Assembly: GCF_021869535.1 (NCBI RefSeq)
Contig: NW_026262723.1
Span: 9,114,001-9,178,000, forward strand
DNA: 64,000 bases
Source: Mytilus californianus
Lineage: Eukaryota
Direction of reading: 5' to 3'
Of the stretch, positions 795 through 59,991 are shown in pieces. The position numbers and the translations under genes were made by a program. The first letter of the stretch is position 1. The number at the start of each line of letters is the position of its first letter. Below the pieces are notes generated by a model. The model was not told the DNA's origin. It saw only the letters and a list, made by a program, of their open reading frames with translations, and made no database searches.

Positions 795-2731
795 ATTGTT
801 GGAATATGATCGTCGTTGAAAGTATTAGTAGAATAACACATCAATAAGCACGATTTCCCAACATTGCTGAAACAGAAAAACAGTATTTGTAATATGAGCA
901 TTAATGGGAGAAGGATCGACATGAGGACATATAGTGTGGGCATGAAAAACCTATACAAACATGGCGGAACAGATATTTCTTTCCAGTTTCTTTTTTTTTC
1001 TTAATTTGTTTTCAAATATCATTTAGACATACATTGGTACGTAAATTACTATCTTATTGCACTAAAAATTGGATTACTGTTAACCCAAAAGTGTATATCT
1101 AATTAACGTAAAGTATGATGAAAAGTAAAACAAAATGCAAAATCCGTTGTTAAAAACCAAAATATCCTCCTAGAGCTCAGCACGTAGCACATTTTTCATA
1201 TTAAATAATCTACTGCAAATCGTGCTTTATTGGATGTTAAACCATTGGTAGAACTCATTAAAGATACTAGGCTCATAGTTTGGTACATTTGTCTTTATGA
1301 AACTTTATTCAGTGCCGATCGAATAAAAAAAGTCCGAAAGCTAAATCAAATAACAATTTAAAGATCATTACAAGCCGATAACTGTTAGTACCAAGAACGG
1401 GTAAGGCAATCATGTCTTGGGTTGCTATATCTTACTGATTCGAATTATTCGATTGAAACATAAACAGTAAATTTAAAGAAAATGACATTTCAATGATCTT
1501 TTATGTGAACACAAAAGTAGCTGATATCCTCTGGCACGAAGTGTCCAACAGAAGTGGCATCGACCAAATGACTGTAAAAATTCATAAAAAGATACCAGCC
1601 ATATAATTTGGTACATGAATTTTTCTTTATGAGACTCCTCAGTGGCCATCGAATAAAAAAAAGCCGAAGGCCAAATCATATAAAAATATAAAGAACATTA
1701 CATACCGATAACTCTTTATACCAAATACGGCGGCGTAGGCAATCATGTCTCAGGTTGATACATCTTACTGTTTTGAATTTTTTGATTGACAAATAAACAG
1801 AATTTTATACAGAAAATAAACATATCAATGATCTTTTATGTCGAAACAAAAGTACTGGATATCCTCGGGTACGTAACGTCCACCACAAGTGGCGTCGACC
1901 AAATGACTGTAAAAAACCTCAAAAGAGATACCAGACTTATAAATTGGGACGACAGACTAGCGTTTCTTCTACACAAGACTCATGAGTGGCGCTCAAAACA
2001 AAGCAGTAGGAAGGCCAAATCATATAAGAAGATGACGAGCATTTAATATCGAAAATTTTGAAACGTTTTGCCAAATACGGCTACCGCAATATTTTCGTAC
2101 GATTTTTCTAAAATAGAAGTTTATTCCATGATTGAATCGACGTTTAATCATGGATTTGCATGTATTATTTCAATCTATATAGAAAACTGTAATAAACCAC
2201 AGGACTGCGCGGTGTTTCAGTCAACGCAATCAAAATTTCATTTGTGCACACAACGTTCTGTCGTCATCCTTTCCTCTCGGTCACGTTGAACTGAGAAATA
2301 TCCAAGTGAAATGAACGTCATACTAGTATTATTGAACAGTTTGTTTGTTATTTGATAGATACATGAAGTAAATCGTGTATAGTTCCAAAATTTCCATATT
2401 TGTTGAGTGAAAGGTTTCGTTTCAAGAATCAGTAACACAAACTATGAAAACGAATGGGTTATGTCATCCTTACAATTCGAAATTTCATCTAAATTTTAAT
2501 ACAATGCCAATAAAACAAAGTTGATAAATCAGGGAAATAATTTTCAGTCAAAGGTTAAATACACACAAAATGTTTGCACACTGAAATAATGAAAAACAGT
2601 ATGCACAAACACTAAAAGAACTATATATATATAATCGGTTTCTCATTAGTGAAAAATATTCATTCAAATAATTAGTGATAATCAAATTGTACCCACCCAT
2701 CACCGACAACAACGCATTTTACATCCTTCAT
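795..2731 (-). CDS. Rac/Cdc42-like Rho GTPase, gene 0 (5' part; exons 2697..2731 and 795..866; remainder lies left of the window)
   Basis: Spliced translation [12 protein letters not shown]|[24 protein letters not shown]. Exons of 35 and 72 nt with GT/AG sites match Rac gene structure; P-loop GDGNVGKS. Confidence 0.85.
1255..2090 (-). mobile_element. Degenerate ~330-bp tandem repeat (about 2.5 units) with hammerhead-core relics; retrozyme-like
   Basis: AAGATAC...TTGGTACA-like anchors recur near 1261, 1589 and 1922. The minus strand has CUGAAUA, CUGAGGA-GUC and CUCAUGA-GUC...GAAAC-GCUA-GUC at the same spacing. Related sequence at 1..130. Confidence 0.6.
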
Positions 2732-2994
2732 CTTAAAGTTTTGATTTTAGGTTAACGAGATTATAACATCTTTTGTTCAACTTTAAATTTATTGTAATTT
2801 TTATACATTCACAGTTCAGATTGTTAACAAGAACCGAAAAAGGATCAATTTCCTTGAAACAGGAACCAAACAAATGTAATCTATATCTATCAATAAAACA
2901 AACTTTATTTTGAAGTCATATAATTAAGCAAAGCGTCAGTGTTACCTTGGTTTCTACTATATCTTTTTATTTACATTTTCATATGGTTATCCTA

Positions 2995-3146
2995 GAATTT
3001 TATGTAATACAAGGCCATAACGAAATGACGTGTCATTAAGGTAAGGAATTTTATGTCATACAAGGCCATAACCAAATGACGTGTCATTAAGGTAAGGAAT
3101 TTTATGTCATACAAGGCCATAACCAAATGACATGTCATTAAGGTAG
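2995..3146. repeat. 51-bp minisatellite, 3 copies
   Basis: Unit GAATTTTATGTCATACAAGGCCATAACCAAATGACGTGTCATTAAGGTAAG starts at 2995, 3046 and 3097. Confidence 0.95.
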
Positions 3147-3180
3147 GACTATTGATACTCCAAGGTACACATATTTAACA

Positions 3181-3311
3181 TACTGTACAGTAAACCAACT
3201 TATTTTGCAGATACAAGTTTTACGTATTCGCGGCGATTTATATTTGCGTTATTTTTTTCTCGCGAAATTCGCGAAAATTAAACGCACGGGAAAATTAGTT
3301 GGTTTACAGTA
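3181..3311. mobile_element. Small MITE-like foldback element
   Basis: Ends TACTGTA(CAG)TAAACCAACT and AGTTGGTTTACAGTA are inverted repeats with TA termini. Confidence 0.55.
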
Positions 3312-4029
3312 TATAAAGTTAAGACGGATAAATTATTGCGTTCATCGTTATATTGATCCAATTGCTGTTCATTCTTAACGTCCAGTTGCAAATATTTCAA
3401 AACATATTTCATGTATTTAGATAAAATAAACAAAAATCAGTTGATAGGGTATGAAAGCGGATGGACCGACAGAATGTACTGACAGAGTAGATTGTCATCA
3501 CTAGTATTGTATTATAAACTCTAATGACTAAGTGAAATTCGCTCAATTCAATCGAAATACTTGGAAGCACATACACAGTGACTGCTTTCAACATTGATAT
3601 TTTATTGGAGTTTACTAAATTTGCAACAACAAATATTCTATGCTTTTTCCGAAAGAGATAGAATTAAGCAAAACTAGACCGTACAGTAAGTGGAAGTGGA
3701 GCTTGATGAAAAGCGGCAGTCGGTCTTTCACTTGTAGGCTTGAAAAAGGCTGGGATTTTTCCCTTAAAAAATGGCAAATACATGCCCTTCAAAGAAATAT
3801 TGCAGCGGTTCTACAGCGTAAAGAAAACGCAGCATCCTCAATGCATAGATTTAACGTTCCAATTCTGATTTGAATTGATCGTGTATCTAAACTACAGCGA
3901 AACTGGAAACGACCTCCACATTACGCATAAATATAAATAACCACACAGTTCTACATTATGATACATGTACCCATGTAGTCAACCACTGTTGTTCCTTGAT
4001 CACCAACTGAGAACTCATAATGATATAAA

Positions 4030-7000: not shown

Positions 7001-8050
7001 TTAGGGAGGGATAAATCCTACTTTGTAAAAAATCACTCTGATACAAACTAAAAATTCTCTGAAACTGACATTAATAAGATGCTTTATTTCTTGATTGACA
7101 ACATATTTGTTAGGTTTGGAGGACGTGTTCATCAACAAACTATCGGCATGCACATGGGAACCAACTCTGCCCCTCTTCTTGTCGACTTGTTCTTTTGTTC
7201 TTATGAGGCTGAATTCATACAGGAACTTCTTAGGAAGAAAGAACAGAAGCTAGGAGTATCCTTTAACTTTACTTTCAGCTATGTAGATGATGTTCTCTCA
7301 CTAAATAATTCAAAATTTGGTGACTATGTTGACGCATCTATCCCATCGAACTAGAAATAAAGGATACAACAGATACAGTTTAGTCTGCCTCATGTCTTGA
7401 CTTACATCTAGAAATTGACAATGAGGGTCGGTTGAAAACAAAACTTTACGACAAAAGAGATGATTTCAGCTTCTCAATTGTGAACTTTCCATTTCTATGT
7501 AGCAACAGTCCCGCAGCGCCTGCAAACGGAGTATATATCTCCCAATTGATACGATATTCCTGGGCTTGCTGCTCACAAGGAAGCTTTAAAACCAAAAGTT
7601 CCAAATGGTGAAATTGGAATCATCCCTTCGTTAATTTTACGGACGCCATCAGGAGTTGGTTGACCGTTATGGAATATCCGTTACACATATGATAGCGGAT
7701 ATGTTCCTAATGTCGTAACTACAATCCCGTTCCCTTTTCACGAATGTGACCTACCGAATTAGACTATTGACCGGGTTTGTACTAACTTGAGCGACACGAC
7801 GGGTGGCACATGTGGAGTAGGATCTCTTACCCTTCCAGAGCACCTGAGATCGTTGATACAAATCAGAATTAAGAAACTGAAAAACCCTAGTTTTTGATGG
7901 GGTTCGTGTTGCTTAGTCTTAAGTTTTCTTTGTTGTGTTTTTTCTACTATTGTTTGTCTGTTTGTCTTTTTCTTTTTTAGCCATGGCGTTGTCAGTTTTT
8001 TTTTCGATTTATGAGTTTGAATGTCCCTCTGGTATCTTTCGCCCCTCTCT
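4030..8050 (+). mobile_element. Degenerate Naiad-type Penelope-like retroelement (GIY-YIG endonuclease N-terminal to RT) with 3' tail family I; interrupted at ~4283..5460
   Basis: NVIYGLEC...YVGETTGRLNKRMCGH (4092..4280) continues after the insertion as IYHRTNNPQ...WIRQLGTATPYG. Linker CTSASSTFIYNPAGHVITGD (decayed CxC). RT motifs LYWIPKLHK, FDFSTLYTSIPH, GTNSAPLLVDL, YVDDVL, KLYDKRDDFSF. Many stops and frameshifts. Confidence 0.85.
4283..5460. mobile_element. Composite foldback/MITE insertion inside the Naiad endonuclease region
   Basis: Hairpin 4379..4470, ~62-bp inverted repeat arms at 4653..4714 and 4790..4850, and hairpin 5377..5432. The GIY-YIG reading resumes across the block. Confidence 0.65.
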
Positions 8051-8109
8051 GGTAGATATTCTATCAGTTGTCGCTGAAAACAATTATAAGCCTTGACCAT
8101 CAGAACAGT

Positions 8110-9170: not shown

Positions 9171-10169
9171 TTTCGCCGTTTTATGCACTAATAACAAAAT
9201 ATGCCGTATGGTATCCCAAAGTAATTAATATTTTTTTTCGAGAAAATGGTACGTTAGACCTGATTTCATGGCAAGCTTAACCTCCCATTTGTATGATAGT
9301 TTTATATGAAATACCAGTGGATGATAAATATAGTTCTCTCACCTGACAATAACATCCACGCTTAAAAGAGTCGTCCGTTTACTATGCGAGATGTACAAAT
9401 AAGCCACATTTTGACGAAATGTGAAAGTTAAATTCGATTTACCCGATCTTAGACGAGGAACTTGATCTGGATACCAAAACTACGTAAATGTCCCTACCAA
9501 CAACTTGAGGAAACCTCTTTCCAAACTATAAGCATCTATTTTGTCAGCAATCAAAGTCGGGCGTCAGAATTATATGTGGAAACTAAAAAAATAAAATGAT
9601 CAGTTAGGAAGAGCACATATAGTGTAAGCATATTTCTTCTTCACCCTACGCTAGTAAAACCAATTCTAAACCTAAAGACAGTTGCAAGAACTTGTCCAAC
9701 TTTGTTTCATAAAAGGAATGGCCAAAAATGAAAACAACACGTTATAAGTTTTATGCGTCCGACGCGCTTTTCTGGATTTACCTTCATCAGGAACGCTCAA
9801 AGCCGAATATATGAACGTCAAGAATGTATAATACCCTAAACAGTTGAAGAGCTATATGATAGATACAGATATCATGTTTTAGGAAAGAAAAACATACTAT
9901 TTAGTCTGTTGGTGGACTGTTAGTCAACGAGGGTATCACCAGTCCAGTAACCAGTACGTTCATACTGGCATCAACATACGGATAATGTTTCTTTTTAAAT
10001 GTTGTGATATACAATTTAAAAAATCATTTAAAATCAAGAAATATATCTCTCTATTGCAAAGCTCTGATTACTTGTCTATACTTTAAGTCCTTTTTTTTTT
10101 GGTTTGATGAGCTCTTTAACGTATTTGTAAGTTGTGGTTTTGCCAAACAGATGGGTGCATTTCTAACCT

Positions 10170-20345: not shown

Positions 20346-20835
20346 TTTATCTGTAATATGAATTGATATATGTAAAAACCTATAAAAACAATCTACATAG
20401 ATTGACAGGGCAAGGGATATTAATATGATCACTTGGAGTTCTCCAACCCTGCAGTAAAATCCATGCTTAGATAAGTATCAATTTGGCTAAGTTTTATAAG
20501 GTCTGTAGAACTGTGGATGTTTCATCCGATTCCTTGCTCAGGGAGGGTGTAAAGCTCTTGTAATCAAACAAACTCTTGTAACAACTCTTTGAGGGGATAC
20601 GATTCCTCGTTCAGGGAGAGTGTAACGATCTTTTACGTAAACGAACCCTTGTTACAACTCCTTAAGGTGATCCGATTCCTCGTTCAGGGAGAATGTAACG
20701 CTTTTTTACGTAAACAAACCTTAGAACAATTCTTTGAAGGAATCCGATTCCTCTTTGATATAGAGTGTAACGCTCTTTTACGTAAACGACCCTTATAACA
20801 ATTCTTTGACCAGATCCGATTCATCGTTTAGATAG

Positions 20836-21468
20836 TGTTACGGCCAGAAATCACCTTTAAACTGTAGCCAACAGACACAAATCAGTAATAAAATTTAACA
20901 AGATTTATTATACAATTTTACAAGAAATATTATACAAATCGAAATGTCAACTTAACTGTTAAAATATATGTCCGATCTTTTGTCTTTTCTTTATCCGGAA
21001 TTCTTCTCTTCACTGTAACGAAATCCAAACAGAATATTATGTCCAGTAGTTACAATCTAGTATGATTTTCGTAAATAAAAATGTCAACTCCAGAGAACTT
21101 CTGAGAATATTAATGTCTAATCTGAAAGTCTAACTTTAGTGTCTATATATATAAAGTTGTGGCCGAAATCTCTAGAACACTGTAGAAGGGAAACTCCTAG
21201 AAACTGTAGAACGGTAACTTCTGGAATACGGTAGAATTTTAAATTACACATCGTAGATAATGATCATTCCAGAATTAATATTTAAGTCAAATAGAAAGTT
21301 CTATTCATCAGTATCTATGATTGTTCCAGTGATTTCTAAACTGCATAATTATATCATTATTTTGTAAACAACTATAAATAATATGTTAGCATATTATACA
21401 TGTTATAAGGCCAAACAAAAAAAAATTAGGCCAAGATAAATAAACATAATAATTACAATATCATACCA
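20836..21468 (+). mobile_element. Putative solo LTR (633 bp)
   Basis: TGTTA...TACCA termini, 4-bp ATAG duplication at 20832..20835 and 21469..21472, TATA-like run near 21143, AATAAA near 21438. Orientation is tentative. Confidence 0.6.
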
Positions 21469-21555
21469 ATAGAGTGTAACGCTCTTTTAAGTAAACGAAT
21501 CCTTGTAACAACTCTTTGTGTCGATCTGATTCCTCATTCAGACAAAGTGTAAATA

Positions 21556-21985
21556 GAAATAAGACGATGTGGTATGAGTGCCAATGAGACAACTCTCCAT
21601 CCAAGTAATAATGTGTAAAAAGTAAACAATTATAGGTCAAAGTACGGCCCTCAACACGGAGCCTTGGATCACACCGAACAGCAAGCTATAAGGGCCACAA
21701 AAAGACTAGTGTAAAACAATTCAAACAGGAAAACCAACGGTCTAATCTATATAAAAAACGCGAAACGAGAAACACTTAAGAACCACATCAACAAACGGCA
21801 ACCACTGAAACAGGTTCCTGACTTAGGACAGTTGCAAAAAATTCAGCATGTTTAAACGTTTTAACAGGCGCCAACCTTCACCCTAACCTGAAATAGTAGT
21901 GTAACCTTATAACATAGAAAGACACACTATAAAATAGCAACTGAAATGGCTTACCTCAATCAAAAAGACATATTAACAAAAACAA
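21556..21985 (-). repeat. Tail family II copy (degenerate twister-like motif ~21811..21890)
   Basis: Starts GATGTGGTATGAGTGCCAATGAGACAACTCTCC; homologous to 40045..40445 and 48300..48610. Confidence 0.8.
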
Positions 21986-24621
21986 TTAAACATACACTGA
22001 ACAGATAAATTTTATCTATGACACAATATTAAATACAATATTGAATAAAAAAGGGGGATGTAAAACAATATCAAAAAGACAACTATAATTTTGGACAAAA
22101 TGACGTTAAATAAAATGACGTACACAGGTAAATTTAAATATAATAATTTTGTTGTTAGGAGGACGAAAATATGTTTTACAAAATAAATGATTTTGTTGTT
22201 CATAGTACGAGAACAGCAGTGAAAATTTATCGTCATACTAAATACTTACAAAGGTGGTACATATTAAAAATAGCGAGACGAGATATAACACAAAATAAGT
22301 AAACATTGAATAACAAAAATGTATCGCTTTTTTACGTAAACAAACACTAATAACAACTTTTTGAGGGGATCCGATTCCTCGTTCAGGGAGAGTGTAACGC
22401 TCTTTTACGTAAACGAACCCTTTAAACAATTCTTTGAGGGGATCCGATTCCTCGTTCAGGGAGAGTGTAACGCTCTTTTACGTAAACGAACCCTTAGAAC
22501 AATTCTTTAAGGGGATCCGATTTCCGTTTCAATTAGAGTTTAACGCTCTTTTACGTAAACGAATCCTTGAAACAACTCTTTGAGGAGACCCGATTCCTTG
22601 TTCAGATAATGTGTAAAGCTCTTTTACATAAACGAATCTTTGTAACAACTCTTTGTTGATATCCGATTCTTTTACATAAACAAATCTTTGTAACAACTCT
22701 TTGTTGATATCCGATTCTTCGTTCAGAAAGAGTGTAACGCTCTTTTACGTAAACGAACCCTTTGAACAGTTATTTGATGGGATCAGATTCCTCGTCTAGA
22801 TAGAATATAACGCTTTTCACGTAAACAAACCCTTGTAACAACTCTTTGAGGATATCCGATTCCTCGTTCAGATAGACTGTAAGGCTTTTTTACGGAAACA
22901 GCACTTTTAACAATTCTTTGGTGAGATCCAATTCCTCGTTCAGATAGAGTGTATCGCTCTTTTACGTAAACGACCCTTGTAACAATTTTTTGATGATATC
23001 GGATTCATTGTTGAGATAGAGTGCAACGCTCTTTTTGTAAACGAATCCTTGGAACAATTCTTTGTAGGGTTCTGAAGATGCATTTACGTGAATTGTTCTT
23101 CAAAAACAGACAATCATCATTTCCGAAACAATTTAATTCTGCATGTATATGCAGTATTAAATTATTTATCCAATAGATTGGATTTTTTATCGATCCGTTT
23201 CTAGTAAGAGCCCTTTGATTTAAAGCTGTGCAAGGTAGCATTTTTTTTAACAATTTTAATTCAAAACGAAAGACAATAGTTTATTTGATTCTAGGGTTTC
23301 ATTTTTAACCTTTTCATCGTTGTTGTTTAGATTGTTTTCCGTCTACATGAAATAATACCTGCATTGCTTTTTTTATCATTCATAGCCGTAATATTTGTAT
23401 TATATCTTGCTTACTTGAAATACTGTTTAAATTAATTGTTAGTTTATCTCTGTCGTAAAACCTCATACATCGAGTTAAAATGAGCCATTGACAGTTCTTT
23501 TTCAGATTACGACCCACCATCCGCCCCAGTGGTAGGAAAGTGTGTATTAGACTTTGGATTTTTAATAACATGTATAATGGCAGCGAACATCGCTGAACAA
23601 AAATGATGTGTCAAAATGCGCATCTGGTGCAGTAAAGTATTACCGTTTAAGTTTTAAGGATGTTCGCTTGTCTTGTTTGTGTCTTTTTGTCAGATATTTG
23701 GAATCCTCTGGTTTTATCCATGTGATGCCATTAAATCATTTTGCCATCTAACCACTATTTTTCTTTCGTAATTTTAATACATATAGGTCTAGCCATATTT
23801 GAAAATTTTATAGATTTCTTGTTCTTTTTTTTCATAGTTTTTGAAAGAAACAAAATGTAAATTGATAATAAAATCAGGTTTAATCCACCATTTTCTACAT
23901 AAGAAAATGTCTGTACTAAGTCAGGAATATGACAGTTGTTATCCATTCGTTTGATGTGTTTGAGTTTTTGATTAGGGACTTTCCGTTTTAAATTTCCTCG
24001 GAGTTCGGTATTATTGTTATTCTACTTTTCATTAAAAATCTAGAGAAAATGATTTCCCGCCAAAGTTTCAATGTCTTGTATCTCAAAAATAAGGACATGT
24101 ACCTTGCATAATGTTCTGCTTTATTTAGTTCCGTTATATACATACTATGTATTTATAACAGTCTTTTAAAAAGCTTGTTATTTTGAAACGTAGTAGCTAA
24201 GATTTTTAGGTAGGTAAATTTTAGATAAATGGACATAACTCTTAAAAAGTCACTGGTGCGTTTGGATTTATCACTGCTTTAAGAATGTTCATAAGCTTCT
24301 GAGTAAAAACAGATTGTTTTTGTACGATGTTCCATGAATGCAACGCCGATTTTAAAAAGTATGGCTTTTACAATAGCATTAATAATCTAACGACGTATCT
24401 CCGGTAAAACTCTAAGATGATACATCGACCTTGATTGTATATATTATCTTGATATATTTTCTTTGATAATTGCATTTGATTAACAACGGTTAATGGAAAC
24501 TCATGTAAATTCATCAGTAGAAAGAAATACGTCTTTAGTCGGTTAATGAAATTGCTTTGGTATTTCCAAACGCTGTATACAATTAAAACACAATATATTA
24601 TGTATATTATTCTGATCGATT

Positions 24622-27600: not shown

Positions 27601-30600
27601 TTTAATGTATAGGTTTTTGTGCGCTTGTTTTTCTATCCACCATTGGTTGTCTTTCTTTGAATTAAGAATTATAGGTTTCATAACGAGTGAGAATTGGATA
27701 TCGCTTGCTATCAACTTGAGTAGTTTAATTCAAATATAATGATTTTTAAAATTAAAAAACTAGAGTTGATTTCAAGCGATACCCAGTTATCACGAGTTGT
27801 TAAACCTATTTCTCTTATGATCAACACTCGCATTGTGTTAAAAGTTCCGCGAATCGTTGATCTAGTCTATTGAACATACCAGTATGACCTCATATGTCAT
27901 ATGTCCTGTTACTGCGTCAAAAATTAACATCATACATTTTAAAACATTTGGTGCGCTCCATAATGTAATAAAATTTGACAAAAAAGAATATTTTCAGGTA
28001 AAAAATGTGAGGGTTTTTTTAATATCGAAGAAATCACATCTGTCAGTTGAAATGGACAAAATATACATGTCTTATCCTTTGAAAGTTGTCAATGACCTAA
28101 TGAATAGCCAATGCCAATGTCGTAATATCGATGATATCATGACGCTGGATAAGCCAATCAAAAGCAGTTTTCGTATCACGTTTTCGTATCACACTCCGTG
28201 TAGTGTGACACGAGAAATATCTCTTCATGCAAGATATAGATAACAGGTCACAACCATAAAAAATTGTATGTATCGCACTGAGGTATCTTTTTTCTTTTGT
28301 ATCATTTATTTGCTTCTAAACTTTAGAGAGAAAAATATTTGCTTTTATCTATATCATTTTAAATCGGGTTGATATCGGTCTCATTGGCAGTCATATCACA
28401 CCTTCTATTTTTTTTTAAATATATGCCTAAATGACGACAAATAATTGATAATCTACAATATAACCTGTCATATCACCGACCTTATTTTTGTTTAATTCAT
28501 ATTCCCATTCAACTTTGAACGTTAAGTCTAGATAGTCCTGAAAACTCACCGTTAGTGGATATGATAATGGACGGAATCGATCGTAATCTTCTTGACCTGC
28601 AGTATCCCATAATCCTAATTCTACATAAATGTCATTCACCATTATAGTTGTTTTGTAATTATCAAATCTAAATTGAATATATATGCAGTATTTTTAATAT
28701 AAAATCACAATAAAGTTCTGAAATTTTTCATACGTTTCAAATGTTACTAAATTTTTAATTTTGAAATAATTTACAATTATCTTGTTCACAAGCACGACTA
28801 AAACATGTCTTTTATACATGTATTTTAATTCAAAATTAAGTGATTGTGTATGAGCGACAGATTGCTAACTGGAGTTTCAACCATTGAAAGGTGTACATTG
28901 TGTGGACTCGTCTCAATCAAATTTGCAATCTAGCCATTGTGTGACTGTGCTATGGTAATTTTTTATATTCTTCTTTTTCATTTTTGCTTATGTGCTTGGT
29001 CTATATGCCATTTCGGTTTTCTTTGTTGACCATTTTTTTGTTTTTATAGTGATTAAGATTATAACACAATGTTGACTGCTGTACCCCTATATAACATACC
29101 TATTATGTCTGTTTGTTTTGTTCACACATTGTTTTCAATATAATGGAATTGTATGCGACGGTCATACAAGTGAGAGGTTCAGCTAGCTATAAAACCAGGT
29201 TTAATCCACCATTTTCTACATAAGGAAATGCCTGTACCAAGTCAGGAATATGACAGTTGTTTTTCATTCGTTTGATGTGTTTTCGCTTTTGATTTTTCCA
29301 TTTGATAATGGACTTTCGTTTTTGAATTTTCCTAGGAGTTCCATATTTTGTTATTTTTCTTTTTGTAAAATGCGAATGGGAAATGAAATCCTTATAGATA
29401 TTGAAAATTTAATGTTTATTTAATATTATATCATGTTGATGTAACATTATCTACAGAGATAATGTATGCTAACAGCTTTGGAACCTAGGTTATATACTAG
29501 AGTATAATATGCAGGGGAAAATTGTATTATCTCCTTAAATTATATTCTCTTTCAACCATGGCTATAACCGTTAAAAGAGAACGTATTTACATTAAAACAT
29601 AACTTATAGTTTTCAAAAATTTCTTAGCCGAATCTTCGTCGAACCATTTCCAAAGGTCAGTAGATAATGATAATGACCGGGTTTGTACTCACATGAGCAA
29701 TACGACGGGTGCCACATGTGAACCAGGTACTTCTAACTCTTCCGGAGTACCTGCTACCACCCCCAGCTTTTGTTGGGCTTCGTGTTGCCCAGTCTTTAGT
29801 TTTCTATGTTGTGTTCTGTGTACTGTTGTTTGTCTGTTTGTCTTTTTCTTTTTCTAGCCATGGCGTTGTCAGTTTATTTTCTACTTATGAGTTTGAATGT
29901 CCCTTTGGTATCTTTCGCCTCTCTTTTTTAATATATCTGATAAATTTGGTATATGTGTGTATAATGATGTCTCCGGGCGTACTAAATAAAGACAAATCCA
30001 GAAAAGCGCTTCGGACGCATGCAATTTATAAAGTGTACATTTTTACAGCACTGGGTCGATACCAATATTTTACATCCTTTCTTTTCGATTTTATATCTGA
30101 TGTTTATATTGAATGTGATAGGTAAATAAAGCATTTCTGAAAGTAATTATATCTTTCAGTCCAAATTCCGTCTGGCAAAAACTACGTTAGCTGGATTTGG
30201 CTACTATTTTAGGTACCTTCTGGTTATAGAGCTCTTCGCATGTTTCAGTACATCATTGGCTATTAAATATTTTGGCTTTTAGTGTTCCTGATCGTTCAAC
30301 TTATAAAGTATTATTTTCAGTTGTTTCCGAACGATAATTTAGTAGATAGATAAGCTATGTTTGAATCCAATTCAATAAAATGGAGGGAACCAAATCTGTT
30401 AACATTTACAGGGTATTTTTAATTTTAACAAATAAACGTACTTCCGAGATATTTACACAGATCAATAAGTAACAGGAAGTTAACTTTGTTACATATGATT
30501 TATAAAAGATAATATCTACTACGAACTACAACACGGAAAACACCTTCCCTTTTGAAGATTAAGAATAAAATACAATTTAGACCACAATGATTTTTTTTTT

Positions 30601-46310: not shown

Positions 46311-46372
46311 ATCTAACACTTGATGTTCCGGAAAGGATTTCATTTCCGTCAAGTATGCAGCATCATCCGTTT

Positions 46373-48208: not shown

Positions 48209-51200
48209 ATGTCTCCTACGTTACAAGGTAGGATATGTTAAAAATATGATGATCAAAATCTTTCAGTTTTGTAAGAGCAAGATTATATGTTTTATAGAAA
48301 TAAGAAGATGTGGTATGATTGCCAATGAGACACCTCTCCATCCAAGTCACAATGTGTAAAAAGTAAACAATTATAGGTCAAAGTACGGCCTTCAACACGG
48401 AGCCTTGGCTCACACCAAACAGCAAGCTTTAAAGGGCTCCAAAATGACTAGTGTAAAACAATTCAAACAGGAAAACGAACGGTCTAATCCATATAAAAAA
48501 TGAGAAACACTTAAGAACCACATCAACAAACGACAACCACTAAAACAGGTTCCTGACTTAGGACAGGTGCAAACAAATGCAGCGGGTTTAACGTTTTAAC
48601 AGGCGCCAATTTAACATAGATAATATAACTAATGTATGAGTATTACATAAAATCTGACAGATTCATAAAGATTTTTTTTGCAAAAACACATCTTAACATT
48701 TTTTCTTTTGTTGATTCTTTAATCAGTTATCTCCAATTGCTTTCCTGGACAAAGTCAGGAACATGACAGTTGTTTTCCATATTTTCCGTTGGTTAATAAC
48801 GTCTAACGTCTGATTTTGTCAGTTTTTATGGACTTCTCTTTTCGAATTTACTTTTTAGTTTGGTATTTTTGTTGATACTATTTTTAGACATATTTGTTTT
48901 TTGGGATAGAACGACACTGTTTGAGAATAAGCAACGATTGAAATACTAAAGACACAGGGGAGCCATTTATATCAAAGAGTCAAATCTAACGACAAAAAGC
49001 GATGAATCGTGGCGGATTGGAATGAATAAAATAAAACTTCCTAAATTTCTCGAGCTTAACTAGAAAGAGCCTGGCTAAGATAGGTTTTTCTAGTCACATC
49101 AAATCTCCCTTGTGTATGAAATTAGTTCTCAAGACCAAGTTTTCCATTATTAAAAACACATAATTACCCTATTTTTTTTTCTTTTTTCTAATTTTTGTAT
49201 TACAGGGCTTAAATTTTTCTTCCTGTTGCTTGTCATTTACATGCAGTTCATGCAAACAACTAGTGTTGGAGGAATTGTCGATTCACCATGTCCTTCTTCA
49301 ATATGCACATGTCAAGACTTTGAGGCTATCTGTTCAGGAGAATATATTCCACGTATGCCAGCAAGGGTTAAACAGATAACGTTTATGAACGGGCAAATAA
49401 AAATACTTTCTGGAATAACAATGGCAAACCTCACAAATAGTAATGTGACACGTCTGAACTTCACTAACAATGGGATTCAGGAGATGAAAACAGACGCGTT
49501 TTTACATATGACAACCATGATACAATTATCTATTTGCGAAGAATCAGCCTTGAATCCGATTGATGTTAGGAATGCTTTGAAAAATATATCTCCAAATCAG
49601 CTACGAAGAATTAGTTTTACCGACAACGCTTGGAAGGAGGTCCCGATTGATATGTTTGATTCTCTTCAAAACAGGAAATCTAAAATCATTGCTCTTACAG
49701 GCAACAACTTTAATGTTTTCAATTTGTCAACATTTTCAAATGTAGAAAAATTGATTAAGCTAAATCTCCAACAAAATCAAATAAGAACAGTTATATTAGG
49801 ATATCTATCGAATGTTCAACGACTGGATCTTGGATATAATGACATTAGCGACATTCCTTCTTTTTGCTTTCATAATACCAGCAACAGTAAAATGCCAAAT
49901 TTGGCATTTCTTAGTTTGGCCTTTAACAGTTTAAAGAATCTACGACCAGTTAGATGCCTCCCAAGGCTGAAAGAACTTCGCTTGGAACAAAATTCGTTGA
50001 AACGTATTCAAACAAACACATTCGCATATTTGAATTCTTTGACAAAATTATACCTCATGGCTGTCGGAGGAAAAAACTTAGATACTTTAGAGAAAGGAGC
50101 TTTCAACAGTACCTCTCTAAGACATTTGTCCTTACGTGACTGTAATTTCCATTTTGATAAATTGAATCTATCTGCTCTCGCAGATCTGTTTTCAAACTGC
50201 AAAAATCTCCAACATTTGGACCTTGCTCAAAATGATATAAATCCTGGTAGGATACTTTTAGGACCAATGCTTTTTCCTTTAGAAAGGCTGATATACCTTA
50301 ATCTAGAGTTAACTAAGCTAACTTATTTGCCAAACCAAGTGTTCTCAAAAATGTCTCTTTTGGAAACCCTAAGCATTAATTCAAATAAGATATATGGTTG
50401 GGACGAGGCTAGAATATTTGACAATGTAACTACTCTACAAGAACTTGACGTGAGTAACAACTATATCAAAGTTGTAAATAAATCATCCATTCCACCTCAG
50501 CTGTTGTCAAGTTTGCGTAGAATAAATCTTGCTACGAACCAGTTTTCTTGTACCTGCCACCAAATGTGGTTTGTCAATTGGCTCAGAAGTACCAAAATTG
50601 ATATTGTCAATTATCCAAAAAGATATCGTTGTGTGCAACCACCAGCTTTAAACGGTGTGCAACTTAAAGACTATAAGCCAACTGTTGAGTCATGTACTCC
50701 CTGGAATCCACTTTTTACCATAGCAATTTCAATGTCAGTCTTCGGATTTATCATTATTGTATCAATAACAGTTTTTGTAAGGTGCTATACTAATTTAAAG
50801 AATTATATATATCTTTTAAAAGTAAGTCGACGACGACGACAGGGTTATCTTCCAATAGATAACAGTGAAGATTATGAGTATCACGCGTTTGTCGTTTACT
50901 GCGATTCTAACCGTTTATGGGTGCATAACGAGTTTGTCAAGAAGCTTGAAAACGAGGAAGGATTTAAACTGTGCATTCATCACAGAGATTTTGCTGTAGG
51001 TGAAACGATAATTGGAAATGTAGATACATTATTGAAAAAATCTTGGAAAGTCGTTGTCATAATGTCAAATGCATTTGCCAAAAGTGAATGGTGTCAGTGG
51101 GAAGTTGACATTGTTCAAGAAAGACGACGAAGGCAAGGTCGAGAAGTTCTTCTTTTGATAATGCTTGAAAATATAAATTCGAAAAACATGACCAGTCCCT

Positions 51201-51328
51201 TGCGTACCTTACTGGACAGTACACCTCACCTTAAATATAAGAAAGGTATGGGTGAAGAATTGTTTTGGAAAGCTATAACCGAGGGTCTTCGAAAACCGAT
51301 TGGACAACCACCAATTTCAGTTCTTTGA
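48209..51328 (+). CDS. Toll-like receptor, single-cysteine-cluster type, ~713 aa; predicted exons 48209..48227 and 49206..51328
   Basis: ORF has LRR-NT (CPSSICTC), multiple LRRs, LRR-CT (NQFSCTC...YRC), a TM helix and a TIR domain (YHAFVVY, LCIHHRDF, SEWCQWE). Acceptor TTACAG at 49205; upstream ATG exon MSPTLQG with phase-1 donor CAAG|GTAGG gives signal peptide MSPTLQGLKFFFLLLVIY. First exon is inferred. Confidence 0.92.
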
Positions 51329-51728
51329 AGTTTTGAAATTAAAATGGACTACTTATATTTCGAGATAATTGATGGTTATAGTATATATTGCATGTTATAA
51401 TACTAAGGTTTTGATACCCCTCAGGTAAAATTGCAACTAGACGGCTTCGCTTGTTCTGGAAAGGCCTTTTAAGTTTTATGCTCTAATATCTATATATATT
51501 TTTGGCTTTCTTAACTATTATTTTTATCAATTACTTGCAATTACAAGTTTACAAATTTATGAAATATCATTAATTACCATGAATATTTACTTAAATATAA
51601 TAGCCCATGCAATTTAACGTAGAAAGGTAGACTAGTGTTCATCGCACAAAGGCAAATACTACAGGCATATCAGGACGAGAAAATGTTAAAATAATATGAA
51701 TATGAACCCCGCTGCTTTATACTGTACC

Positions 51729-52374
51729 AGCATCAAACGTGATAGTTCACGGGGAAAACCTGTCAACCTACCCAGACACATAGCATCAAACGTGATAGTT
51801 CACGGGGAAAACCTGTCAACCTACCCAGACACATAGCATCAAACGTGATAGTTCACGGGGAAAACCTGTCAACCTACCCAGACACATAGCATCAAACGTG
51901 ATAGTTCACGGGGAAAACCTGTCAACCTACCCAGACACATAGCATCAAACGTGATAGTTCACGGGGAAAACCTGTCAACCTACCCAGACACATAGCATCA
52001 AACGTGATAGTTCACGGGGAAAACCTGTCAACCTACCCAGACACAATATTCTTAGCGTGATAGTTCACGGGGAAAACCTGTCAACCTACCCAGACACATA
52101 GCATCAAACGTGATAGTTCACGGGGAAAACCTGTCAACCTACCCAGACACAATATTCTTAGCGTGATAGTTCACGGGGAAAACCTGTCAACCTACCCAGA
52201 CACAATATTCTTAGCGTGATAGTTCACGGGGAAAACCTGTCAACCTACCCAGACACAATATTCTTAGCGTGATAGTTCACGGGGAAAACCTGTCAACCTA
52301 CCCAGACACAATATTCTTAGCGTGATAGTTCACGGGGAAAACCTGTCAACCTACCCAGACACAATATTCTTAGC
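51729..52374. repeat. 53-bp minisatellite, 12 full units plus a partial, two variants (order AAAAAABABBBB)
   Basis: Shared core CGTGATAGTTCACGGGGAAAACCTGTCAACCTACCCAGACACA plus TAGCATCAAA (A) or ATATTCTTAG (B). Confidence 0.97.
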
Positions 52375-53560
52375 ACGTTACCATGAGATAACGTGAAATT
52401 AGACGTACATGTAGAATTCTAATTACTACTCCAGAAAACACTTCAATTAGGAAGAAAACAGTGCTATTCCTTTCGAGGGAAATAAATTGCAGTAAATGAA
52501 AATTCAAGAGTCAATGCTCACCCACCCTCAACCCCCCCCCCCCCCCCCCCAAAAAAAAAAAACGCAAAACAAAAAAAAAGATCGATAATAATTCTAATTC
52601 ACTGTATAAGTTTCCATTTTTCAAATTGTGATACGCGGTACATGTACAATCCACTTCTTTATTTATTTATGTGTAAATATTATACATTTAAAGAAATTTC
52701 CCCTTTGAATATCATAAATAAATGTTCTGTCGGTTGAGATGATATGAGTTAGAATTAGTTTCATGTAGTTATACATAAAAAAAAGTTAAAAAGAATATAA
52801 CAATATTTTATTATAATAAGATGTACAGGTAACAAGTTTAATCTTTTATCTCCAAACAAAATTTTTACTATTTAGCTTTTTTTATTGTTAAACCATAAAC
52901 AAAATCCCATAATAGTAAAGCGATGTACGTTCCGCACGTTGAGTTGAGTTTATAATTAGATCTTATAGCTGGCATTTATGATTGACAGGTATTCATCTTA
53001 TATTTCCCGATACGTTGTATGCTTATAAAATCTTCCTTGTTCGCAAATAAACAAAATCTACTAAAATGAGGAAGATAGTAAAAACATGCTTTCCACTAAC
53101 GAAAATCTATAGTATCCTTATCGCATCCTTCAATGATTTACTTTAAGTTAGTTCGCAAACATAATCTTCTATTGTTTTCACCCCCCTCCTCCCAAAAAAA
53201 CTCAACAACAACAAAAATCGAAACAAAAGCATCCTCAAGTAAAAAAACATGCTCATAGAAAAAGACACTCGATCCAATCCAAAACCAAAATCCACGGGTA
53301 TAGAGAAAGTCTAGACAAAAACTAAATATTTTTGCAACGTATACATACATATCGTGTAGTCCAATCAAAAATAGAAGTTATGTCAAGTGCTTTTGATGGC
53401 TTATCTCTGTTAGGTGCATTTGGTGTCCTTTTAAAAAAATATAAAGGCAAGTTCAATTTTGGTACGTTTCGTCAAATAAAAATCCATATAGAGTAATAAT
53501 ATTCTCAATGAAAACGAGTATTTTATTCTTATAACAGTAAAATACAATAGTGAAATATGG

Positions 53561-56500
53561 TTATAGTAAACCACATTTCCCTTGACCGTCCTGTCTTATT
53601 TTCTTGTGATGTAGAACTATTCTAACAGCATCTTCAAAAACTTCCTTTAGACCCTCTTGTGTCATTGCAGAGCATTCTACGTATTTTTCGGCTCTTATTT
53701 TCTCAGCTAGTGCCTGTCCCTGTTCGTGTGTTATAAACGTTTGTTCCTGTGTCTGTGGCTTGTTTTTCATTCTTTCATATGTATTTCTTAAGTCAATCTT
53801 TGTTCCAACAAGTAACAGTGGTGCGTCATGACAGTGATGGCGGACTTCGGGAAACCACTGAAATGTAAAAAGAAAAGCTCTTTTTTTTTCAGACAGTGAT
53901 TTGCATTTCATGGATATGAATATACTTGATTACGAAATTATGCTCTTTGATATCGGATAAATTTGATAATGTGTTAATGGGTTTTAATGAAAAGATTGAT
54001 ATAACTTATAGGTTAACAATACAAAAAGTCGCATTTATCAAAAACCGTGCATTTCTTGCGCTGTTCGCACAAAAAAACAAAATAAAAATTAAATCTTTTA
54101 TATCCTGTTCCTATGATTTTTGTTTGTTCATGTGTGCGTAGTGATTTTATGTGAAGATGCTTGTTATTATGTCATGTGTTCCGCTCAGTGGTTTAATGTC
54201 ATGAATTTATACACAATATCCTCCCTTATGCATTACATATACTTTTGGGGTATTAGATTTCTTTTTCTTTTTGTAATGAAATGTAGCCTACTTATTTACA
54301 TTGGGCTTTAATAGATTTCACACGTCATGGCGCTGCTGTATGAAATATACTTGGAAGTACAGCAGCTGATATGACAGTACAAAGAACTTATACCTAAGAT
54401 TCCTTACTATGATCAACATGACAAGTGCCACTAATGGAGCAGGATATACTTACCCTTCCGGAGCACATGAAACCATCCCTAGTTTTTAAAGGGGTTCGTG
54501 TTGCCCAATCAATAGTTTTTTATGTTAGTATTATTGAAATGTGTGGGCCTGTTTGTCTTTACATCATGTTGCAATTTTTGTCATGGCATTGTCAGATTTA
54601 TTCGACTTATGAGTTTCAAATGTCCCTTGGTATCTTCCGCCTATTGTTTCTGTAACTAGACAGATTCTTTAGCACGGTATTTATTATTGTTTACTTTCAG
54701 CTGTGCATGTTCTTTTGCTTGAACTACCAATATGATAGTGTGAGGCTATTATATTGAACTGATTTTCATTTACGCTGTGAATTCTACTTTGCGCTTTCCG
54801 AAGTTCCACTGGTCACAGTTATTAAGTAATGAGCCGTAAAAAAATCTAACTCTGGCATATGTTGTCTTTAAATACATCTCAGTATTTCTGTCTTGTAATA
54901 ATTGCAGTTTTCTGGCATGTTTTTTGTATTTGTTAAATTTATTTGTCACAACTTTGTCCAGATTCTGGCCGATTTACAGCTCGACATATATTATAATTCC
55001 GGACTCAATTTGTTGCTGACCGTTTGTTGTCCACTACATATGTAAAAACTCTTTGCATACACTGTATGTATATTTATCCAATTCTGAACAGGAGAACTAA
55101 TATCTAGCATCTGAAATCTGGCATCTATATGCTTTATTCTATCTTGTCCATAGCAGATGCAGCCGGTTGTACGAACGTGTCATTAGCCTAATTGGTCATT
55201 AAGTCTTCATTTAGCCTTTATGATGCATTAGGCTAATGACACGTTCGTACAAACGGCTGCTGATTATTATAATCCTTAAACTTACTTTTAGTTCAATATT
55301 TTGGTAACTTACTGGACCTTCAACAGTGAAACACAAAAGGAATATGTCCTGCAAAAAATTTTCAATGAAGTAAATTTCTTTAAAATATTCACTGGACAAA
55401 CATGTTATAGGAACATAACACTGGTCGTAGTTTAAGACAGAAATAGAAATTAAGGACGTTGCATGAAATACCTCTTGCTTTAAATGGGATACTCTATGTG
55501 CATTTAACCCCAAGTATTGACTTTCATATAGATATTGTCAGTTTGACTTTTATTCACAAATTGAACCCTTAATAAAGATGGGATTCCTTTTTTGGTTAGA
55601 TGCTTAAAACCTCCGTTCACACTTGTGAGCTTCAAGTTAAAGTTCGTGTATAGGGAATGTGACACTTTTTCAGCAAGTTTAAGAACCCGTGCAACACCTC
55701 TTTCAGGGGTCTGATGAACATTCACCCTCCATCTTCCGTCCTTCACGCCGGGCAATCTACTTTTCTGAACCTTATTTATTGTTAATTTGATTTTGTCTTA
55801 ATTTCATGAAATATTTGCCACTGGACGATAAGCATTCGTTTGAAGACGAGCCTTTTTTATCGCCTGAATTTACAAAATTAACACTATTTATTTTTATTTT
55901 TCTACATTATTGCATCAATTTTATAGTAATTATGATCGATAATTAAAAACACTTAATTTAATAGGTCATCCTTAAGCTTGTTAAGCATGTATCTACATAT
56001 GAACACGTGTCGAAATATGCTGTCTAACGATATGAAAGCCACTATAGATATCTTATTACATGTGTCTAATCAAATAAGAAAACTCAGATTACATATGATG
56101 CGGACATATTGTAAATTGAGAATATTACACCAGATTTTTTTATTGACTAAATCTACTGGACGAATATTGGTACAATGAAGCTGTTTTTTTTAGTAAAGTC
56201 AACATGTTTTCATTACAATAATAGATTAAGAAATCAATGGACAACTTATTTACCAACAAAATGATACGACTGATATATTGATTGTTGTGTGCTTAATGTC
56301 CAGTGTCAAATACTTTACATTTAACACGAAAACAAATGTAGTATTACAATAACCCCAAAGTGTGGATCGACGGGAATACAGGGATAGAATTTTGACAGCC
56401 ACTGAAAAAGAGGTAATATATGATAGGGCAGTCGTTTAGACTTAGTATACAGTAACAGGCACTCCCTCTTCACTGTGCTTCAGATAAAACGTTCTGTTTG

Positions 56501-59500
56501 CAAACAAATGTGGCTGTGTATTTACACATCCCACGCAGTCAAACGGGTGCACTCTTTAGCTTTGATTTTAATGTCGGTGACCATATTTCGTAACTTCAGT
56601 CAATATTTTGGGTTTGAATGGCAGGAAGAAACGGGAAAGTTCAAATTGGTTCTTGCATATTTGGCAAATCTAAAACAAAGTTACAACTGGATAGAATATC
56701 GTATCAACATATCCAAACACGTTACACCGCAAACTCTATATAAATACAAGCATGGACGTTGTCTAAAATTCACCCACTTTATAAAGTAACAGTGCATAGC
56801 TGTCTCGGTTCGCTTCGAATGCTGGGTTGGTGGGATCGATGATCAAAGACTTCAAAATGGTGATAACTGCTTCTAAGCAAAGCACTAGGGGGTTAAAATT
56901 ACATCGGAGTCAGAATAATGTGTCTGAGTAGGATGGTTAATTTAATTAATTTAGTTGTCATCCTGAATGTGCATGTAACATTAGCCACTGGACGTTTAGC
57001 AGTCAATGAATCGATACTACTTTGCAAAATAATGCATTTAGCATATCACAATTAGTTAGTTTTAAAAAAAAAGTCCAACTCGTAACATTCATAATTTAAC
57101 ACTTAATTTAAACTATTCACACACAACTCATAAACAGTTCGTTGTAGTAAACATAAATTTCGGCTTAAAGAAATTACAAATAGAAACATTTTATTAGTTT
57201 GAAAGCAATATTACATGAAATAATGTGAAGTAATTGTTTTTGAAGTACGTTAACTCGACATTTATATTTGATTTGAAGTAAAAGGCTTAGAAAAAAACCG
57301 AAACCCTGTCTTAATCGATAAATCGTATGCAACGTTTGCATGTGTGCAAGTGTAAAAACTTGAAAACTTACTGTGAGTGGATACGACAATGGTCTCAGTC
57401 TGTCATAGTCATCTTGTCCTGCTGTATCCCATAACCCTAGCTCTATACAATTACCATCTACCATTAAATTCGCATTATAATTGTCAAATCTATAAATTAT
57501 AAGCTTTTTATAGAGATAAGTATTTTTGTAACGAATGTTTTCGTTGTTTGCGCAAATGAAATGAATCATTTATAAAAAAATTAAAATAACAGTTTACAAT
57601 TTCATCCAATGTCAACTTTTAGATTTGAAAGACCTATAATTATTAAGTTATATAAGTATACGGGTGTGGTGAAATAATTGCATCTTGTTATATCTATACA
57701 TATTTTAAGGGGGGTTACATTTTTTTCGGGAGTAGGGCGGTAAATTGATTCGCTTATTTATAATATGAAACTGATTATATTCTCATCATTTTGTTTTTTT
57801 TTCTGTACAGAAGTTTTAAAACAGACTTTAAGCATATGACAAAATTTTGTTTTCCCGCATTAATCCTGAATATATGAAATCCATTCGGACGTAAACCATC
57901 CTATTTGTATACCAGCACAATAAGCACTTCCCGATATTATTTAGTATTGTATTAATTGTAACAGGCAATTTTTTCATCTGTAATACATACAATATATACC
58001 AGCTAAATACTTTTCCAGAATTGCATTTTAATGTGCGCAACTTTAGGAAACGTAGAGGCTTTCAACTGATCGATATAAACATGGGGAGGATAGTAGTCAG
58101 ATAAGAACCATCAAATATGTCTCTCCAAATAAACTTTATATACTTTGCAATAGTCCCATGTGAATACTCTTTATGAAGGTTTTTCCATTTAATAAAATTG
58201 ATAATGGAAATGGGGAATATGTCAAAGAGACAACAACCCGACCAAAGAATGCAAAAAGTATAAGATGAAAATATAATCAAGTTTTGTATTACCACTACAT
58301 GTGAGATATCTTACATTGAAGGAACGTGTTCATGTTGGAATTTGTTGCTAGAATAAGACATTAAAATACATGTCTTTCCTACATATCTGAAAATAGTGAA
58401 AAATATCATAATCAAAACGAATTATCTTGCAGTTTAATATTTTTTATATTCTTTAATTCGCGCTTATTGGTTGATAAGAGTTACATGTATTATAGAATAA
58501 AAGTGAAATGCGAATTGCCGTTTTTTTGCAGTTTTGGCGTACGCCTCTACAACAATCAAACACAGTCTATTTTTCACCGTCTACTGTTTACTTCTGATTA
58601 TAATTAACCTAAAGCTGTCACGGAATAGAAGTTACTTCATAATATAAGTTCCAAATGAAAATAATATTCTGTAATATTATTTCCACTGGAATAAATACAA
58701 CAGTAAATGTTCCTAACGGAATAAATGGAAGTAGAATATGTGTTTCAACAGGAACAGATATTATGACATTGTTTATAACAAAGTTTCCAGTAGAACTTCT
58801 GTTAGGCGGAACAAATATACGTTGACAAAGCATGAATGAGCAGTAATATTTAGAAATTTCAATCTCATTTATTATCGAATCATGTTATATTCTGTTGATT
58901 ACCACTATCTATAATAGTTCCCTGTGTCAATAGGACTTGTCAGTACTTTGCAAGTGAATATGTATATTAGTACATGTAAGTACAAAGAATATTAGTAGAT
59001 AGTAAGTACTTGAGGAAGTACTAGTAGCTTGAGGAAGTACTAGTAGCTTGAGGAAGCACTAGTAGCTTGAGGAAGATTGCTAGATGGTTAATATATTGCC
59101 TTATTTACTTTTAGTTGAAACATGTGTGTATTCTAAGTCGGTTTTTTTTGGAAAATATTTTTTTTCATTTAGAAATCTGTTGAATTGATCCATAACTTAT
59201 CAAAAACTCAACGTAGTTTTTGGACACGTCTTGATTATGCATAAAACATTGCCGCGGCGTTATTTATTATATAAAGCAAGCAACACTCAATCAATATATA
59301 TATATAGAATAATAACACTTTTACTTTTGATACTGACTTTATCAGCAAGAAAATCAAACGAGCTCGCTAGGAGCCCGCTAGGGCGAGTTGATATTCGATC
59401 GAGCTGATGAATATGAAAATAGAAGATGTGGTATGATTGACAATGAGATAACTATTCTACAAAGTTCAAATGAAGTGGATGGAAGCCAGTATAAAAAAAA

Positions 59501-59991
59501 ACAAAATGCCATCATTCTTAGTATCGGAAATTTGTTTTTACAATTCGTTTTTTTTGGGGGGTTGAGAATATGAAATAAAATTAATTAGTTAATAAAACTA
59601 CTTTTACGCGTACTCAGTGGTAGTTGTTTGGTTACATATGAATGAAGTCAGGTGCATTTCATTGATAAATTGACACGAATGAACATGAACACGCGACGTT
59701 GCTGCATTGATACGTATATTTTCGAGTATTAAGTCCAGTCCATGATCTAACCAATATAAGGCAGTTGGATCAAAGAAAAAATGTACTAATTGCCAATAAA
59801 CATGTTATACGGATGCCGAAGACCGTAATATCTTGATGTTTTTTCTAGTTGTATCGCAGTTAAATTAACGTTTACCCAACGTCTCATTTCATTGATTTTC
59901 AAACAAATATTGAATGAATTGAATATGAACATGATAAGTAAATACATCTTACTTACCCGTCTCCTACAACGACACATTTTATATGCTGCAT
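53561..59991 (-). CDS. Rac/Cdc42-like Rho GTPase, gene D, 194 aa; exons 59957..59991, 58315..58386, 57372..57489, 55286..55348, 53561..53857
   Basis: [40 protein letters not shown]...[20 protein letters not shown]|[21 protein letters not shown]|WFPEVRHHC...GTKID...ECSAM...GKCGLL. Intact frame; alternative in-frame ATG at 59997. Confidence 0.93.
55159..55260. other. Inverted repeat, 34-bp arms with one mismatch, 34-nt spacer
   Basis: GCAGCCGGTTGTACGAACGTGTCATTAGCCTAAT / ATTAGGCTAATGACACGTTCGTACAAACGGCTGC. Confidence 0.9.
59009..59075. repeat. 19-bp tandem repeat, ~3.5 copies
   Basis: CTTGAGGAAGTACTAGTAG units start at 59009, 59028, 59047 and 59066. Confidence 0.9.

Follow-up and report, generated by a model that had tools for sequence, protein, structure and literature searches.

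The window analysed here, a 64,000-nucleotide (nt) stretch of the Mytilus californianus genome (~9.114-9.178 Mb of JAKFGE010000007.1, assembly GCA_021869535.1; record coordinates are window coordinates + 9,114,000), carries five Rac-like GTPase genes, all of them on the minus strand, GTPase signatures being found on that strand only. We label these genes G1 to G5 in the order of window coordinates; an initial annotation of this DNA had named four of them A, B, C and D, which correspond to G2, G3, G4 and G5, its fifth gene being G1. They probably belong to a tandem expansion of Rac-derived genes, so far seen in Mytilus only, whose intact members would be working switches with a shifted cycle. 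Few signalling proteins of eukaryotes are as conserved as Rac; in Mytilus, a canonical Rac1 is left untouched alongside selected copies that are fixed for changes at positions known from cancer genetics. The array could therefore be read as a natural series, running from a near-canonical to a dead switch, that informs on how far the Rac cycle can be rewired and yet be useful, and it is a candidate among the lineage-specific expansions typical of mussel stress and immune biology. Its value is moderate, given that the genes bear database annotations ('Rac2-like' or 'ras-related C3 botulinum toxin substrate 2-like') and that fold and family are ordinary. Literature searches found no description of this Rac-like family in Mytilus.

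Structure, Rac ancestry and distribution of the array

The five genes could be rebuilt from the sequence on a single plan, with exons of 35 nt (41 in G4 and G5), 72, 118 (115 in G4), 63 and 294-297 nt and with AG/GT at all internal junctions. Given these shared exon sizes, intron positions and phases are identical among the five genes, and the earlier description of co-oriented paralogs with identical intron positions stands. So does the spacing of about 11-17 kb given for them, the distances from start codon to start codon being 14.7, 14.4, 11.5 and 16.5 kb. The count of five genes needs more nuance: all five are present, but G1 is cut by the window edge, G4 contains an in-frame stop and the array runs past both ends of the window. 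An unsplit P-loop motif scan of the window returns no match because intron 1 splits the Gly12 codon (after its second base), and first exons were located instead with a GK[ST] scan combined with a short-first-exon scan. The window contains no N runs. Several models are matched by existing records: spliced G5 is identical at every residue to NCBI P0001 ('ras-related protein Rac2-like [Mytilus californianus]'), spliced G2 is identical at every residue to NCBI P0284, and the two exons of G1 are the start of P0295. For G3, the annotated isoform P0306 skips exon 2; P0309 is another annotated exon-skipping isoform. Pfam PF00071 matches the exon translations of the window genes.

Beyond the window, the array extends to at least eight co-oriented genes over ~125 kb. 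Downstream of G1 come P0283 and P0294, each with 193 amino acids (aa), which agree with the window genes in exon sizes and strand; upstream of G5, the array continues with a gene named G6 here, at L001:131-2131 (record minus strand), ~3.9-5.9 kb past the window end. G1, G2, G3, G5, P0283 and P0294 all have an uninterrupted reading frame, intact splice sites and an intact CaaX box.

Transcripts were seen in the datasets X1-X3, which were taken as RNA from their spliced contigs and from the zero depth of intergenic bins. In X1 and X2, both from the same organism as the window, contigs cover the last exon of G5 together with a ~650-nt 3' untranslated region (UTR) ending near 52904, then jump from 53857 to 55286 with minus-strand GT..AG ends and continue (as reverse complement) into the end of exon 3; exons 3, 4 and 5 of G5 are thus spliced as modelled. 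The same G5 junction is found in a related species (X3), and a raw-read RNA run (X21) gives ~1x depth. A separate observation concerns intron 4 of G5, where an interspersed repeat (54375-54573) reaches an RNA contig depth of ~580 to 2,400 vs ~10 for the G5 exons; the core of this repeat occurs at least six times in the window vs 0.01 expected, and its comparison with Rfam gave no match.

The array genes share with canonical Rac1 (M. coruscus RAC1, human RAC1/RAC2) the five-exon plan, the fold, W56, the TKxD motif, the CaaL box and a partly basic tail. The exons of canonical M. coruscus Rac1 encode residues 1-12, 13-36, 37-75, 76-96 and 97-end (36/72/117+1/63/single last exon), which is the plan of the array, and the scallop Rac gene, with 5 exons and 192 aa, matches it as well (PMC4669188). 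Database comparisons rank Rac first: phmmer against the PDB places Rac2/Rac1 (E ~1e-27) before RhoC (2e-22) and Cdc42 (1e-21), and in a Foldseek search with the AlphaFold2 (AF2) model of G2 the top 24 hits are Rac1/2/3 at ~60% identity, vs 49% for RhoA and 57% for Cdc42. The Rac-type residues W56, T115 and K116 are present in all window genes. In a maximum-likelihood (ML) tree, G1-G3 form a clade (support 98/91) that includes P0283, P0294, P0308 and orthologs from four other Mytilus species; the G5 clade and the G6 clade are each supported, and a single clade for all array genes is compatible with the approximately unbiased (AU) test (p = 0.40). Two other origins were considered and rejected: a retrocopy origin since introns are present, and derivation from Cdc42 or RhoA on account of W56, TKxD and the ranking of matches. 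The M. coruscus Rac1 locus itself holds, 8 kb downstream of the last exon, another version of that exon with 67% identity (L007:28903-29190), which the annotation has merged into a 286-aa model; this could be a partial duplicate or an alternatively used terminal exon.

The initial annotation had proposed a lineage-specific expansion, and this is what the searches recover, relatives closer than canonical Rac coming from Mytilus species only, plus one transcript of unknown species. Word searches with P0001 (G5) and P0274 (M. edulis G2-type) gave closer-than-canonical matches from M. californianus, M. edulis, M. galloprovincialis, M. trossulus and M. coruscus, the sole exception being that Logan transcript (P0301, run SRR30826388). 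An exhaustive phmmer search with the last exon of G2 against 1.84 billion cluster representatives returned two single-domain matches above ~55% identity, both from M. edulis; the remaining high scorers are multi-domain fused models from unrelated taxa. Within the genus, the M. edulis locus, which reaches 1.7 kb into the G4 ortholog, keeps the order G6-G5-Toll-like receptor (TLR, on the opposite strand)-G4. In M. trossulus (L008, 10001-15905 and 27183-37182), an extra Rac-like gene stands directly upstream of G6; it keeps Ala13 and Pro29-Gly30 and is identical to Rac1 at 121/177 residues. No G5 exon was found in M. trossulus within 10 kb downstream of G6, nor a G5 ortholog in a protein search, which may reflect presence/absence variation.

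Local duplication of Rac is not unprecedented: a bivalve Rho-family survey without mussel counts a single Rac in scallops, and in oyster a complete copy together with a truncated one (PMC4669188), and oyster CgRac-2, like Rac1-4 of sea urchin, amphioxus and Ciona, arose by local Rac duplication followed by divergence (PMC4669188). Unlike these other invertebrate duplications, the Mytilus array has eight or more copies, full-length and strongly diverged, whose catalytic-site neighbours are derived, many tandem copies vs one or two canonical Rac genes. In another bivalve, Dreissena polymorpha, residues 1-188 of P0287 are Rac1-like with Lys16Leu, Pro29Ser and other switch I changes, and are fused to a canonical Rac1 tail. 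The grouping of P0287 with canonical molluscan Rac1 suggests that a local Rac duplication and decay took place independently in this bivalve.

Derived residues, constraint and the putative switch cycle

When residues are numbered by alignment on canonical M. coruscus Rac1 (P0013 residues 1-192), Ala13 and Pro29-Gly30 turn out to be replaced in every window copy (Table 1). The alignment agrees with the substitutions listed in the initial annotation: N, D, N, K and Y for Ala13 and N, N, N, Q and Q for Pro29, in window order, as well as Leu67Phe in its genes A and B (F67 in G2 and G3). Phe28 is kept in all five window genes, while Pro29 is lost in all five. At residues 13, 29-32 and 35, the derived states are the same in the M. 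edulis and M. galloprovincialis orthologs, and differences between orthologs avoid the switch regions. The GTPase core is otherwise kept in most copies: G1, G2, G3 and G5 retain Gly12, Lys16, Thr/Ser17, Thr/Ser35, Asp57, Gly60, Gln61 (DTAGQ), TKxD and SAK/SAM, so that all five G motifs are intact in these four (with Ser35 in G5), and not in G4 (I12, L35, DTCGS) or G6 (DTACK). All window genes end in a CaaL geranylgeranylation box, CILL in G1-G3, CNLL in G4 and CGLL in G5, and the CaaX box is preceded by a basic run in G2 and G3 (KQKRRP/KPKRRP) and by a weaker one in G5. Between strand 5 and helix 4, where Rho proteins carry an insert of about 13 residues, every copy has a segment of fitting length (+1 residue), in which no more than 1-4/14 residues agree with Rac1.

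Table 1. Genes and repeat of the window, in window coordinates, with derived residues and C-termini of the Rac-like genes
Feature	Coordinates	Strand	Description	Derived residues; C-terminus
G1	exons 2731-2697, 866-795	minus	exons 1-2 only; exons 3-5 before window start; full gene = P0295, 193 aa	N13, S17, N29, H32
G2	exons 17480-17446, 16663-16592, 13885-13768, 12720-12658, 11454-11161	minus	193 aa	D13, N29, F64, F67; CILL
G3	exons 31921-31887, 31027-30956, 28667-28550, 26861-26799, 24915-24622	minus	193 aa	N13, N29, F67; CILL
G4	exons 43450-43410, 42761-42690, 41019-40905, 39432-39370, 38719-38423	minus	stop in exon 3	I12, K13, Q29, D32, L35, C59, S61, C97; CNLL
G5	exons 59997-59957, 58386-58315, 57489-57372, 55348-55286, 53857-53561	minus	196 aa; feature 52904..59997 incl. 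3' UTR	Y13, Q29, H30, H32, S35; CGLL
TLR	49241..51328	plus	single exon, 695 aa from first ATG; annotated; only long open reading frame in window	
Tandem repeat	51729..52363	no strand	53 nt x 12, 96% matches; spacer between TLR and G5 3' ends, noncoding for both	

These genes had been described as fast-evolving, and relative to Rac1 they are. Over 177 residues, 171 are identical to mussel Rac1 in limpet Rac1, 164 in Hydra, 161 in bird RAC2 and 154 in Mucor Rac; canonical Racs thus stay at 87-97% across fungi, cnidarians and vertebrates, vs 85-113/177 (48-64%) for the array genes. The divergence is concentrated in switch I (8-10/16 residues kept), strands 2-3, helix 3 and, most of all, the insert. 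Switch II is near intact in the window genes except G4, with 17-18/19 residues kept in G1-G3 and G5, close to canonical Rac1. This evolution is neither unconstrained nor broadly adaptive; pairwise dN/dS values lie at 0.15-0.44 and only the Rho-insert segment exceeds 1. The ten pairs among G1, P0294, P0283, G2 and G3 give dN/dS of 0.25-0.44 (0.26 for G2-G3), and G5 compared with its M. edulis ortholog gives 0.155 at dS 0.27. By segment, insert codons 121-137 of the same five genes have a mean pairwise dN of 0.32 and dS of 0.24, a ratio of 1.38, and the other segments have 0.2-0.3; the elevated insert value, which comes from 17 codons and non-independent pairs, is only a lead.

How could such proteins work? 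Judging from their motifs, the intact copies would be prenylated, membrane-anchored, working GTP switches. Their cycling could be shifted to spontaneous GTP loading and weak sensitivity to GTPase-activating proteins (GAPs), in the manner of RAC1 P29S and of naturally occurring atypical Rho GTPases, with a bulky residue 13 that would stand beside the phosphates, and their set of partners would differ from that of Rac1. G4 and G6 would have moved further, to a Rnd/RhoH-like state in which GTP hydrolysis would be impossible, and the TLR would be a neighbour retained by synteny. In RAC1 P29S, switch I is opened, intrinsic exchange is faster and the protein is GAP-resistant (PMC9029563; bioRxiv 10.1101/2025.03.04.637030). 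Independence from guanine nucleotide exchange factors (GEFs), which the initial annotation had raised as a possibility, is at most a reasonable inference when this published biochemistry is transferred to the array. The loss of the switch I Pro29 is what the array shares with the set of fast-cycling or atypical GTPases (RAC1 P29S, RAC2 P29L/Q, F28L, Rac1b, RhoU/V, RhoD/F). There are key differences: (i), unlike RAC1 P29S and RAC2 P29L, the array has Asn, Gln or Asp at residue 29, together with changes at 13, 30 and 31, and keeps Phe28; (ii), its Pro29 changes are germ-line and selected and not somatic mutations.

The most altered copies are G4 and G6. Substitutions at residues 12 and 61 abolish GTP hydrolysis, and Rnd3 carries the motif DTSGS. 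G4 shows the Rnd/RhoH-type pattern at the Ras-equivalent positions 12, 59 and 61 (I12, C59, S61), where G1, G2, G3 and G5 keep G12, A59 and Q61; the likeness to Rnd1-3/RhoH lies in a non-Gly residue 12, a bulky polar residue 13, a non-Ala residue 59 and a non-Gln residue 61 (DTCGS) in G4, and in DTACKE in G6. Thr35Leu and a premature stop further set G4 apart from Rnd/RhoH. Exon 3 of G4 lacks one codon (at the Tyr40/Lys41 position) and carries an in-frame TAA at 41009-41007 (minus); apart from this stop, the reading frame is uninterrupted and the exons can be spliced. Exon 1 is shared with the M. edulis G4 ortholog, in which position 12 is Thr instead of Ile. In this genome, G4 is thus probably a pseudogene or a null allele of a Rnd/RhoH-like copy. 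In G6, switch II reads DTACKE (G60C, Q61K), Trp56 is changed to Val (W56V) and the tail ends in ...FLCTL, with a Cys at -3 and without CaaX spacing. G6 looks like a pseudo-GTPase by these residues; it has conserved orthologs in both M. edulis (P0009:1-92) and M. trossulus (P0010:194-313). Neither G4 nor G6 groups with Rnd/RhoH; both sit in a Rac-derived array and have the Rac gene structure, and the resemblance to Rnd/RhoH would therefore be convergent.

Several points weigh against the reading of the array as a Mytilus expansion of working, shifted Rac switches. The putative altered cycling is read from sequence and from the RAC1 P29S analogy, and a literature search found no Rac assayed with N, Q or D at residue 29 or with N, D, Y or K at residue 13. 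Confidence in the AF2 model of G2 is only moderate (pLDDT 73.6), and the insert stays below pLDDT 50 in it and forms no helix. Expression is seen directly for G5 alone. In the tree, G4, G5 and G6 are long branches in a Rac polytomy that also holds a partial Cdc42 row, so their common origin with G1-G3 rests on tandem position and gene structure. Finally, the representatives searched were clustered at 50% identity and mytilid genera are possibly under-sampled; 'Mytilus only' could widen to Mytilidae.

Alternative explanations

In one alternative, the GTPases would have expanded for an immune function, working together with the embedded TLR and under common regulation, for example as Rac-like adaptors downstream of the receptor in haemocytes. 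In mammals, Rac1 takes part in TLR2 signalling; here, the TLR does lie inside the array, between G4 and G5 (C and D of the initial annotation, which had placed it correctly), and M. edulis has the same gene order, G6-G5-TLR-G4. Transcripts of the TLR and of G5 are moreover both present in X1 and X2, at low depth and without a condition contrast, the TLR being covered at lower depth than G5. The linkage is therefore found in a related species, as the co-regulation proposal would have it, though synteny is the default expectation at dS ~0.27. The co-regulation part itself does not hold as far as a shared promoter is concerned: the TLR is on the opposite strand, is convergent with G5, from which a 53-nt satellite separates it, and starts 5.8 kb from the G4 start, with no promoter shared with G4. 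There is one TLR vs at least eight GTPase genes, five of which lie 20-80 kb off, and the M. edulis copy of the TLR carries a 1-nt frameshift in that assembly. Mytilus also has the highest TLR count surveyed (PMC10279657), and a TLR within 64 kb is not rare. Taken together, one TLR beside at least eight GTPases, its opposite strand, the abundance of TLRs and the short divergence make a chance neighbourhood the simpler account, and we regard an immune specialisation coupled to the TLR as unlikely.

Slightly less likely still is a decoy or guard function, in which bacterial toxins that act on Rho proteins would be countered by the paralogs as baits or as toxin-insensitive spares, and selection by the effectors would bear on switch I, Gln61 and the C-terminus. 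Residues targeted by such toxins are altered in part of the array: Tyr32 is His in G1 and G5 and Asp in G4, Thr35 is Ser in G5 and Leu in G4, and Gln61 is Ser in G4 and Lys in G6. Residue 13 toggles between close orthologs (N/D, A/F), and the insert segment has the dN/dS of 1.38 given above. Against this, Y32, T35 and Q61 are all kept in G2, G3 and P0283; switch I is conserved between orthologs and not diversifying, and overall dN/dS is well below 1; and the insert value carries the limits already mentioned, few codons and pairs that are not independent. The boldest combination, a private Mytilus family of 'P29-mutant', self-activating or GAP-resistant Racs that grade to dead forms and serve innate immunity as toxin-insensitive spares, decoys or guards, possibly wired to the TLR, is in our view improbable.

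That the array consists of redundant Rac copies drifting to pseudogenes, their odd residues reflecting relaxed constraint, is very improbable for the array as a whole: G4, with its in-frame stop and the loss of Gly12, Thr35 and Gln61, G6, which has lost Gly60, Gln61 and Trp56, the annotated exon-skipping isoforms P0306 and P0309, and dN/dS values of 0.25-0.44 that are far beyond what canonical Rac tolerates would all fit such decay, but none of the six genes listed above has lost its frame, its splice sites or its CaaX box, dN/dS stays clearly under 1 (0.155 for G5 compared with its M. edulis ortholog), the derived switch residues are shared between species, G5 yields spliced transcripts, and four or five Mytilus species still carry orthologous lineages.

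The TLR gene and repeats of the window

The TLR gene has the organisation expected of its family, with an LRRNT-like Cys cluster, leucine-rich repeats (LRR_8 5e-27), an LRRCT, a hydrophobic transmembrane (TM) stretch and a TIR domain (8e-17); a signal peptide is not apparent behind the annotated start Met. Its stop codon lies 2.2 kb from that of G5, with which it is convergent, and it is head-to-head with G4. In mussels, TLR genes typically consist of a single exon, and the Mytilus TLR repertoire is the largest among the animals surveyed (PMC10279657). Between M. californianus and M. edulis, dN/dS is 0.35 in the ectodomain half and 0.13 in the TM-TIR half.

The frameshift in the M. edulis ortholog (L002 ~28059-28101) is a 1-nt deletion, the sequence being TTTTGGAAACC in M. 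californianus and TTTTGAAACC in M. edulis. It shifts the frame near residue 367, and the annotation bridges it via an intron; the deletion may be genuine or a fault of the assembly. Between the TLR and G5, the X3 contig from the related species skips 51713-52321, the 53-nt repeat being absent or different there. A further set of satellite-like arrays, with a 72-73-nt unit and 76-84% matches, occupies 20524-23064, between G2 and G3.

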